Shown in pieces: positions 1,265-4,084 of a DNA stretch of 64,000 nt. The stretch lies in the sequence record OR670491.1. One strand, written 5' to 3'. The notes beneath the pieces were generated by a model. That model had not been told where the DNA came from. It did no database searches and saw only the letters and a list, made by a program, of their open reading frames with translations. The position numbers were made by a program, and so were the translations under genes. Position 1 is the stretch's first letter, and each line of letters opens with the position of its first letter.

Positions 1265-1354
1265 GGTCCCGTTGCCTAGCGTCCGAAGGCAGCCGACTCA
1301 TAATCGGTCACAGTTAATGACACGCCACTGGTTAGAATCCAGTCGGGACCACCA
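1265..1354 (+). tRNA. atypical class II tRNA with CAU anticodon (Met or Ile2)
   Basis: Acceptor GGTCCCG/CGGGACC plus ACCA; anticodon arm GCCGA-CTCATAA-TCGGT; long variable arm; T loop TTAGAAT. Confidence 0.8.
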
Positions 1355-1358
1355 ATTA

Positions 1359-1431
1359 GACTCTGTAGTTCAGTTGGTAGAACGCTTCACTCATAATGAA
1401 GAAGTCGCTGGTTCAATCCCAGTACTGACCA
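1359..1431 (+). pseudogene. decayed tRNA (CAU)
   Basis: Intact D, anticodon (CTTCA-CTCATAA-TGAAG) and T arms, but the acceptor strands GACTCTG and ACTGACC do not pair. Confidence 0.7.
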
Positions 1432-1439
1432 CAAAAAAA

Positions 1440-3137
<1,698 letters not shown>

Positions 3138-3559: not shown

Positions 3560-4084
3560 ATGGAGAGAGTTGAAGAATGGCGTGATGTTGTTGGTTATGA
3601 AGACCATTTCCAAGTTAGTAACAAAGGTAGAATTTACAGCAAAAGAACAAATAAAATTTTAGTTCAAGGTACTAATAAAAAAGGTTATAAAGTATTAAGT
3701 ACTAGAATTGGTGGAAGAACTGGAGTATGTAAGTGTTTTAGGGTTCATATTTTAGTGGCTCAAGCATTTATATCAAATCCACATAATAAGCCCATTGTAA
3801 ACCATAAAGATGGCAATAAACAAAACAACGAAGACTGGAATTTAGAATGGTCTACATATAGTGAGAATACTAATCATGCTTATAAAAATGGTTTAACAAT
3901 ACCATTAAAAGGAACTGAACAAGTTCAATCCAAATTAACCGAAGATGATGTTAGATACATACGTTCAGTGTATAAACCATATGATAAAACATATGGTGCA
4001 TCTATGTTAGCAAAACAATTTGGTGTACATCATAGTTTAATATCGGATATAGCATCACATAAATCATGGAAGCATGTTAAGTAA
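3560..4084 (+). CDS. NUMOD4-HNH homing endonuclease
   Basis: NUMOD4 EEWRDVVGYEDHFQVSNKGRI and HNH RVHILVAQAF...VNHKDGNKQNNEDWNLEW; ATG at 3560 preferred over the track start at 3515. Confidence 0.9.
   Translation: MERVEEWRDVVGYEDHFQVSNKGRIYSKRTNKILVQGTNKKGYKVLSTRIGGRTGVCKCFRVHILVAQAFISNPHNKPIVNHKDGNKQNNEDWNLEWSTYSENTNHAYKNGLTIPLKGTEQVQSKLTEDDVRYIRSVYKPYDKTYGASMLAKQFGVHHSLISDIASHKSWKHVK

Follow-up and report, generated by a model that had tools for sequence, protein, structure and literature searches.

The window analysed here is a stretch of 64,000 nucleotides from sequence record OR670491.1, the 355,583-bp genome of Escherichia phage vB_EcoM_JNE01 (genus Asteriusvirus); its position 1 is position 248001 of the record, with which its first 8 kb are identical, and its G+C content is 31-38%. 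A cluster of three tRNA genes occupies 1165-1432, bordered by a small open reading frame (ORF) at 758-1129 and by a converging 1.7-kb ORF at 1440-3137. The middle gene of the cluster, on the plus strand at 1265-1354, specifies a tRNA that joins the anticodon CAU to a long variable region. In bacteria, the long variable arm is the textbook reserve of leucine, serine, tyrosine and selenocysteine tRNAs. The argument developed below is that this long-armed CAU tRNA is probably a tRNA-Ile2, a reader of AUA, on an unusual body.

ARAGORN recognises 1265-1354 as a 90-nt tRNA whose anticodon is CAU, and positions 1-71 of the Rfam tRNA model (RF00005) align with 1265-1351 at 50.4 bits (E 1e-8), where the cut-off is 29. 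There are 87 nt up to the discriminator, A73 at 1351, after which CCA is encoded at 1352-1354. The seven pairs of the acceptor stem (1265-1271 with 1344-1350) are all Watson-Crick, beginning with G1-C72; C4 and C5, at 1268-1269, pair with G69 and G68 (1346-1347). By direct reading, U8-U9 are followed by a 4-bp D stem (GCCU/AGGC) with the loop AGCGUCCGA, in which G18 lies at 1281 and U19 at 1282; the D arm is Tyr/Ser-like. The anticodon, at 1299-1301, sits in the loop CUCAUAA, with U33, A37 and A38, on a stem (GCCGA/UCGGU) that contains G27.U43, C29-G41 and G30-C40. The variable region (1309-1326) is 18 nt long and holds a 3-bp mini-hairpin, GUU-AAU-GAC at 1313-1321, between four unpaired nucleotides on one side (CACA) and five on the other (ACGCC); it is closer to the variable region of bacterial tRNA-Tyr than to those of Ser or Leu tRNAs. 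The T stem is 5 bp long, giving a 7/5 arrangement of acceptor and T stems, and the T loop UUAGAAU puts A56 at 1334. Sequence comparison finds G19 and C56 in relatives where this tRNA has U19 and A56. By size it is a class II tRNA (a variable region of more than 10 nt; 15-20 nt across the family of homologues described below), but its anticodon is not one for Leu, Ser or Tyr, and CAU is shared by all 11 distinct members of that family. The original prediction, made by a model from the letters alone, had pointed to the CAU anticodon, the long variable region and the U19 and A56, and the analysis confirms it, along with its view that the body, with its 18-nt variable region and Tyr/Ser-like D arm, is unlike that of a normal Met or Ile2 tRNA. 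What had been described as a long variable arm is, however, long only as a region: in place of a Ser/Leu-type helix there is the mini-hairpin with its unpaired flanks.

Global pairwise identity to E. coli tRNAs does not discriminate between isotypes; determinant positions were therefore used, with the tRNAs of E. coli K-12 as references. E. coli TilS requires C4-G69 and C5-G68, and the U4-A69 and A5-U68 of tRNA-Met are negative determinants (PMC2500205; PMC1635315). The JNE01 tRNA has both of the required pairs. The bacterial Ile identity set includes A73, C4-G69, C29-G41, A37 and A38 and, in the D arm, U12-A23, G16, D20 and D21 (PMC9976931); A73, C4-G69, C29-G41 and the anticodon loop are all present. 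The acceptor marks of an elongator tRNA-Met are absent: U3-A70, C4-G69 and C5-G68 are found instead of C3-G70 (the usual pair in Met and fMet tRNAs; PMC1635315), U4-A69 and A5-U68. TmcA, which acetylates C34 of tRNA-Met, needs C27-G43, C30-G40 and G44 and is blocked by G27.U43 (PMC2500205), and the JNE01 tRNA has G27.U43, G30-C40 and C44. Initiator tRNA-fMet is marked by an unpaired 1-72, three G-C pairs at 29-31/39-41 and A11-U24 (PMC1635315), for which G1-C72, GCCGA/UCGGU and C11-G24 are substituted. The marks looked for by the enzymes that charge long-armed tRNAs are similarly scarce. Seryl-tRNA synthetase (SerRS) calls for a long helical arm and G73 and would meet a 3-bp hairpin and A73; for the E. 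coli leucyl-tRNA synthetase (LeuRS), which looks for A73 together with A15-U48, G18G19, A20a and G19-C56, the tRNA offers A73 but has G15-C48, G18U19 and U19-A56; and for tyrosyl-tRNA synthetase (TyrRS) the key U35 (with G34) is replaced by A35, the agreement being limited to A73 and the shape of the D and variable arms.

The gene is rare. A blastn search finds it in 9 of 50,697 phage records: six Asteriusvirus genomes (JNE01, G17, phAPEC6, Sharanji and two others, the other five each carrying a sequence one base off that of JNE01), Erwinia phage Kaldavass and Xanthomonas phages XbC2 and XaC1. Pattern scans added members from IMG/VR and metagenomes, including one in a phage-type array of 16 tRNAs (L045/L100) and others on AT-rich contigs. 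A pattern of D loop and anticodon gave 76 matches in genome and metagenome contigs, 15 of which are tRNAs; the remainder is about what chance predicts. The only match of the first viral pattern scan (L017) was a chance match and not a tRNA, and a degenerate copy with a broken T stem (L019) was omitted from the alignment. E. coli genomes give no blastn match to the tRNA, which is therefore not a recent host copy. Recent origin as a within-genome chimera of the phage's own tRNA-Tyr was likewise considered and rejected, because the Tyr tRNAs of Kaldavass and of the 16-tRNA array differ in their D and variable arms.

The 11 distinct sequences were aligned and 25 pairs, those of the cloverleaf with the tertiary pair 19-56, were scored. 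Pairing is kept in 97.8% of the cells, and 16 of the 25 pairs have changed on both sides. None of 500 shuffled alignments attains the observed values, and sliding the partners out of register drops pairing to 24-48%. Covariation and these controls therefore identify a functional RNA under purifying selection for a tRNA fold. What varies and what does not is informative in turn: pairs 2-71, 3-70 and 6-67 covary freely (3-70 is U-A in six members, A-U in three, G-C in two and never C-G), all 11 members have C5-G68 and 8 of them C4-G69, and the anticodon loop CUCAUAA, A37 and A38 included, is invariant. The three pairs of the variable stem also change (G-C 8 and C-G 1; U-A 8, C-G 1 and U-G 2; U-G 8 and U-A 1), with two of the three altered on both sides in one member (L050) and a different pairing register in the plastid-like members described below. 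Among the jumbo-phage members, the core of the variable region is nearly invariant while the stems covary, which hints at a sequence-specific contact.

The place of the gene in the genome bears on what it does. A short-armed CAU tRNA of 75 nt, with G3-C70, C4-G69, C5-G68 and G27.U43, fills the slot between the Ser(ACU) and Asn tRNA genes in phages 121Q and UE-S1 and in no fewer than 10 further Asteriusvirus records. One of these records annotates it as tRNA-Ile, and it is 80-90% similar to tRNAs of many other phages, Stx-converting phages among them. The G17-type phages and JNE01 have the long-armed tRNA in the identical slot, with identical flanks. That two different genes alternate at one slot suggests that they serve one function. 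The tRNA sets of more distant carriers can be read in the same way. Kaldavass has 35 Rfam tRNA hits, 31 of them typed by ARAGORN, and these cover all 20 amino acids; Ile(GAU) is present and no tRNA has a UAU anticodon. Besides the long-armed tRNA there are two with CAU, which literature determinants rather than isotype-specific models class as initiator-like (A11-U24 and G12-C23; nearest to E. coli metZ) and as Met-like (C27-G43 and A5-U68, with metT-like D and T loops). So full a set needs a reader of AUA, and with the other two CAU tRNAs accounted for as Met- and initiator-like, the long-armed tRNA is the only one left for that task.

Codon demand runs parallel. In ORFs of at least 150 aa in the window, AUA occurs 20.0 times per 1000 codons, against 3.3 in a 50-kb sample of E. 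coli; no other codon matched by a phage tRNA exceeds this six-fold phage/host ratio. AUG is used alike (23.6 versus 23.5 per 1000). The Rfam model finds nine tRNA-like genes in the whole of JNE01 (Leu UAA, Gly UCC, Ser UGA, an aberrant UCU, Ser ACU, the long-armed CAU, a second CAU and two Thr UGU), while XaC1 has eight (Ser ACU, Thr UGU, Asn, Phe, Leu UAA, Gly UCC, Arg UCU and the long-armed CAU), all of which except Asn and Phe serve codons that this phage group uses far above the level of E. coli. Apart from the long-armed tRNA, both sets serve mostly phage-enriched codons: UUA, GGA, UCA, AGA, ACA and AGU. Phage T4 carries tRNAs for Arg (UCU), Gly (UCC), Leu (UAA), Ser (UGA) and Thr (UGU), together with an AUA-reading Ile tRNA (CAU) on a short-armed body. 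T4-type sets thus follow the same logic, of tRNAs for host-rare codons, and are close in content to those of JNE01 and XaC1.

Whether AUA and AUG keep their usual meanings was examined in 41 orthologue pairs (mean protein identity 64%; 4783 aligned codons) of JNE01 and BF17, an Asteriusvirus without the long-armed allele. AUA is partnered by AUU 24 times, by AUC 10 times, by Val codons 13 times, by Leu codons 13 times, by Met three times and by Ser not once; AUU and AUC exchange as AUA does, and AUG gives the usual Met pattern. These normal exchanges of Ile and Met therefore give no sign of an altered meaning of AUA or AUG in JNE01. The phage genome has no match to PF01171 (the TilS-type PP-loop ATPase), to PF00133 or PF09334 (class I Ile/Leu/Val/Met synthetases) or to PF00587 (the Ser/Thr/Pro/His-type class II core), and modification and charging of the tRNA must therefore be the work of host enzymes.

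Our preferred reading, to which we would give a probability of about 0.6, is that the long-armed CAU tRNA is a tRNA-Ile2, reading AUA and dependent on the TilS and isoleucyl-tRNA synthetase (IleRS) of its host. On this account an early sigma-70-type promoter would drive its transcription along with that of its neighbours, and ordinary tRNA processing would follow; host TilS would recognise C4-G69, C5-G68 and the CUCAUAA loop and convert C34 to lysidine; host IleRS would then add isoleucine, guided by lysidine-34, A35, U36, A37, A38, A73, C4-G69 and C29-G41; and the product would supply AUA decoding to AT-rich phage genes in a host whose tRNA-Ile2 is scarce. Class I synthetases such as IleRS and methionyl-tRNA synthetase (MetRS) approach their tRNAs with the variable region toward solvent, so that a longer variable region could plausibly be tolerated by IleRS.

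A number of observations weigh against that reading. Some core determinants of IleRS are absent: C12-G23 replaces U12-A23, and C16, C20 and C20a stand where G16, D20 and D21 are expected. The marks that are present in JNE01 are not universal in the family, 4-69 being U-A in 3 of the 11 members and C29-G41 being turned to G-C in 6 of the 11 (the L094 group, L050 and the plastid-like members). The variable region of 18 nt, against 5 nt in E. coli ileX, departs from the short loop of described tRNA-Ile2, and no tRNA-Ile2 with a long variable region was found in the literature, which bears on what TilS and IleRS will tolerate. In the 16-tRNA array the long-armed tRNA is the sole CAU tRNA and lies beside Ile(GAU), an arrangement that a Met role fits too, and the assignment of the two remaining CAU tRNAs in Kaldavass depends on literature determinants in the way already stated. 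Finally, if TilS were not to act, charging by MetRS would be probable, since CAU is the main Met determinant.

The last two points lead directly to the interpretation that gene annotation favours, an elongator tRNA-Met with an unmodified C34, charged by MetRS through its CAU and reading AUG, whose odd body might, for example, escape a host nuclease that attacks tRNAs; the original prediction had likewise raised a nuclease-resistant tRNA-Met. CAU with A73 is indeed the core of Met identity (PMC9976931), both GenBank and ARAGORN label the gene tRNA-Met, and the 16-tRNA array, which has Ile(GAU), offers no other CAU tRNA. But U4-A69, A5-U68 and C3-G70 are missing, as are the TmcA marks C27-G43, C30-G40 and G44; the codon in six-fold excess is AUA, with AUG not enriched at all; Kaldavass, which has its own Met-like and initiator-like CAU tRNAs, would be left without a reader of AUA; and the slot in sister phages belongs to an Ile2-type tRNA. 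With the Ile2/TilS marks, the slot and the codon excess all on one side, the Met interpretation is unlikely, and the doubt that the original prediction cast on the tRNA-Met label turns out to be well founded: Met marks are missing and Ile2/TilS marks are in place.

Two further interpretations depart from conventional decoding by Ile or Met. The tRNA might have no decoding role; instead it could draw off a host enzyme or a defence nuclease as a decoy, act as a regulator, or be decaying as a gene. The variable-region core, more conserved than the stems in the jumbo phages, could mean a sequence-specific partner, and the family is rare; yet the features that translation demands are intact and covarying (7/5 acceptor and T stems, U33, A37, an encoded CCA, a restored elbow pair), the tRNA substitutes for a normal one at the same slot, and a very similar tRNA occurs in plastid-like genomes, whose tRNA sets are small. 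All of this makes a non-decoding role very unlikely. We consider least probable that LeuRS, SerRS or TyrRS charges the tRNA and that it recodes or miscodes, putting Leu, Ser or Tyr at AUG or AUA. This would account for a D arm and 3-bp variable hairpin that resemble those of E. coli tRNA-Tyr and tRNA-Ser, for A73 as in Leu and Tyr tRNAs, and for G2-C71 and C11-G24 as in Ser tRNAs; E. coli LeuRS and SerRS ignore the anticodon (PMC9976931), and nematode long-armed tRNAs with an Ile anticodon are a precedent (PMC3333845). Each of the three enzymes meets an obstacle, however. SerRS would find an arm of insufficient length and poor pairing, and A73 as the discriminator; for LeuRS, there is G15-C48 rather than A15-U48, the D loop is of the Ser/Tyr type and JNE01 has neither G19 nor G19-C56; for TyrRS, A35 stands in place of the key U35. 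Pairs 4-69 and 5-68 are conserved as TilS requires, and the exchanges of AUA and AUG between orthologues are those of Ile and Met, without a Ser signal. The suggestion in the original prediction of a residue other than Met at AUG or AUA thus finds no support in so far as it concerns residues that are neither Met nor Ile.

The U19-A56 pair calls for separate comment. In the nine other distinct members of the family (from Erwinia, Xanthomonas, IMG/VR and metagenomes) the pair is G19-C56, with GG in the D loop and UUCGAAU as T loop; U19 with A56 is found only in the E. coli Asteriusvirus sequences of the JNE01 and G17 types. The tally of G-C in 9, U-A in 2 and unpaired in none bears out what had been predicted from the one sequence, a two-sided change that keeps the pair Watson-Crick. 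The D-loop and T-loop positions are otherwise invariant across the family, apart from the variable position 16. Since all relatives outside the E. coli phage clade have G19 and C56, both partners changed within that clade. A rough estimate puts at about 1 in 40 the chance that a second change hits the pairing partner with the right base. This being a single evolutionary event, its statistical weight is modest; as far as comparison of sequences can tell, the swap agrees with selection for folding. In E. coli, G19-C56 and U54:A58 contribute to recognition by LeuRS (PMC9976931). As an observation in its own right, the short-armed CAU tRNA of 121Q (L041:1407-1481) and the Ile(GAU) tRNA of the metagenomic 16-tRNA array (L045:5646-5721) have the same odd T loop, AUCGUUC, with A54/U58 instead of the usual U54/A58, which looks like a second swapped tertiary pair of the elbow. 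At the E. coli phage slot, both alleles thus have one changed elbow pair each, the long-armed tRNA through U19-A56 and the short-armed tRNA through A54/U58.

A more adventurous proposal, which we regard as doubtful, takes the long arm and the rebuilt elbow to be adaptive features rather than relics: a Tyr-like chassis for AUA reading, in jumbo phages and separately in some red-type plastids, that frees the tRNA in part from host systems. The tRNA might thereby go unseen by a host factor tuned to the usual shape of tRNA-Ile2 or tRNA-Met, or to the G19-C56 and U54-A58 elbow. That factor could be a tRNA-cleaving defence nuclease, TmcA or, given that elbow pairs matter to it, LeuRS, and the conserved sequence of the variable region could dock a phage protein. 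In a bolder variant of the proposal, part of the tRNA pool may be charged with a residue other than Ile.

Comparison with known tRNAs shows how the long-armed tRNA combines features. With E. coli tRNA-Ile2 (ileX/ileY) it shares the loop CUCAUAA, G27.U43, C29-G41, G30-C40 and A31-U39 in the anticodon stem, and G1, G2, C4-G69, C5-G68, C6-G67 and A73 in the acceptor; set against ileX, the acceptor strand reads GGUCCCG for GGCCCCU and the anticodon arm GCCGA-CUCAUAA-UCGGU for GGCGA-CUCAUAA-UCGCU. The body is where they part: ileX has a 5-nt variable loop, a D arm of GCUC-AGUGGUUA-GAGC with U12-A23, and G19-C56, and the phage tRNA has 18 nt, C12-G23 and U19-A56. What it has in common with the short-armed CAU tRNA of 121Q and UE-S1 is the slot and its flanks, C4-G69, C5-G68, G27.U43 and the encoded CCA; beyond these marks the two sequences are unrelated, the 75-nt tRNA having a short variable loop and the T loop AUCGUUC. 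The resemblance to E. coli tRNA-Tyr (tyrT/tyrU) extends to U8-U9, the D loop AG-N-GGCC-R-A, A73 and a variable hairpin GUC-NNN-GAC that can be laid beside the GUU-AAU-GAC of the phage; tRNA-Tyr differs in its GUA anticodon with the key U35, its unrelated acceptor and anticodon stems and its shorter variable-region flanks. Nematode nev-tRNAs and bacterial allo-tRNAs likewise have long-armed bodies with anticodons other than those of Leu, Ser and Tyr. In contrast with the phage tRNA, whose arm is a mini-hairpin and for which the evidence points to normal Ile decoding, they are charged through the long arm, with Leu or Ser, and miscode; allo-tRNAs differ further in having acceptor/T stems of 8/4 or 9/3 instead of 7/5. 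Our literature searches turned up no phage tRNA of the CAU, Ile2 or Met kind described as long-armed; one survey places 'Met' among the cyanobacterial tRNAs with long variable regions, without detail. The annotated records that carry the long-armed gene all label it tRNA-Met. On the sequence evidence, it would be a new structural variant of the phage-encoded AUA reader.

Homologues also occur on plastid-like contigs. Seven identical metagenome contigs and one variant carry a long-armed CAU tRNA of 84 nt (L069:2479-2562, L117:8794-8877 and, at L121:9306-9391, a further copy) within short stretches of 26-32% G+C. It has the D arm of the phage family, a T arm identical to that of Kaldavass, A73 and a 15-nt variable region with a 3-bp hairpin; CCA is not encoded. 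The contigs have a gene order of red-type plastids: rpoC2-rpoC1-rpoB; rps20, rpl33 and rps18; a 169-aa TPR protein (likely ycf3) and atpB; the tRNA; rpl19, trnH and rps4; and rbcL-rbcS with an AAA ATPase that is likely cbbX. When phage records are searched with this tRNA, the long-armed CAU tRNAs match it best, at 80% identity. It may be the AUA reader of its organelle or may derive from trnY.

In JNE01, on the plus strand at 1126-1154, lies a near-consensus sigma-70-type promoter (TTGACT, 17 nt, TATAAT, with TG just upstream; 11 of 12 consensus matches), which ends 11 nt ahead of the first tRNA and probably drives all three genes, Ser(ACU), the long-armed CAU tRNA and a chimeric tRNA, as a single transcript. 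A near-identical promoter-like motif precedes another tRNA cluster upstream of the window, where it lies before the Ser(UGA) tRNA (L015:4466-4494). The layout common to the two is TTGACTAAATA, a few bases, CAGTACTGATA and a -10-like hexamer (TATAAT at 1126-1154; AAAAT in the upstream copy), and it is probably a shared early phage promoter. The tRNA-Ser(ACU) itself, at 1165-1256 on the plus strand, is seen by ARAGORN, Rfam and direct reading, and the order Ser(ACU), then CAU tRNA, is kept in G17, 121Q and UE-S1. Its anticodon has A34, the ACU anticodon recurs in Xanthomonas phage XaC1, and AGU codons occur 28.3 times per 1000 in the phage versus 6.1 in E. coli. Transcription was looked at in contigs assembled from public RNA libraries: one contig of 228 nt spans 1200-1427 with one difference, the flanks having no contig from that run, and in a second run the 121Q-type allele is joined to the Ser tRNA. 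The contig proves nothing, but it is weak evidence compatible with a stable transcript of the tRNA cluster.

The third gene of the cluster, annotated as tRNA-Met at 1360-1432 (plus strand), is a chimera that Rfam aligns over model positions 8-63 only. The 15 nt at its start are identical to the 5' end of the G17 tRNA-Asn; what follows is the 3' part of a Met-like CAU tRNA (C27-G43, C30-G40), and Erwinia, Yersinia and Serratia jumbo phages carry intact relatives of that part. The acceptor stem being unpaired, the chimera is probably inactive, and the long-armed tRNA is therefore probably the single working CAU tRNA of JNE01. The same Met-like fragment adjoins the same 1.7-kb ORF in UE-S1, and it travels with that minus-strand ORF (1440-3137) and an HNH endonuclease gene (3560-4084); the chimera looks like a by-product of a mobile cassette, the ORF with the HNH endonuclease, that inserted into tRNA-Asn.

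Other unusual tRNAs came to attention in these phages. About 330 nt before the start of the window there is a tRNA-like gene (L015:4590-4668; record 247590-247668) that Rfam scores at 33.3 bits and ARAGORN misses. Its anticodon loop carries UCU (Arg AGA), it lacks a normal D arm, and its variable region is long. In the Erwinia, Xanthomonas and IMG/VR relatives, the long-armed CAU tRNA has a CUA tRNA of the amber-suppressor type as a neighbour, about 1 kb away or less. Also encoded by Kaldavass are a tRNA whose anticodon loop has 8 nt, with the ARAGORN reading UUAG, and several 'tRNA-OTHER' genes of 110-120 nt. (The coordinates for the CUA tRNAs and Kaldavass are L002:366-439, L003:933-1006, L016:854-927, L018:358-431 and L020:2000-2073; L119:26631-26708.)

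If the tRNA-Ile2 reading is true, the database label tRNA-Met is wrong for this gene, and Ile2 identity and lysidine formation can sit on a class II-like chassis. It would also follow that the near-universal G19-C56 can be replaced by U-A in a natural tRNA that works with the E. coli machinery. The long-armed body offers a natural scaffold for the engineering of AUA or AUG decoding, and the plastid-like homologues hint at a design older and wider than these phages. Should evasion prove to be the purpose of the body, host defence as a force that shapes phage tRNAs would gain a new example.

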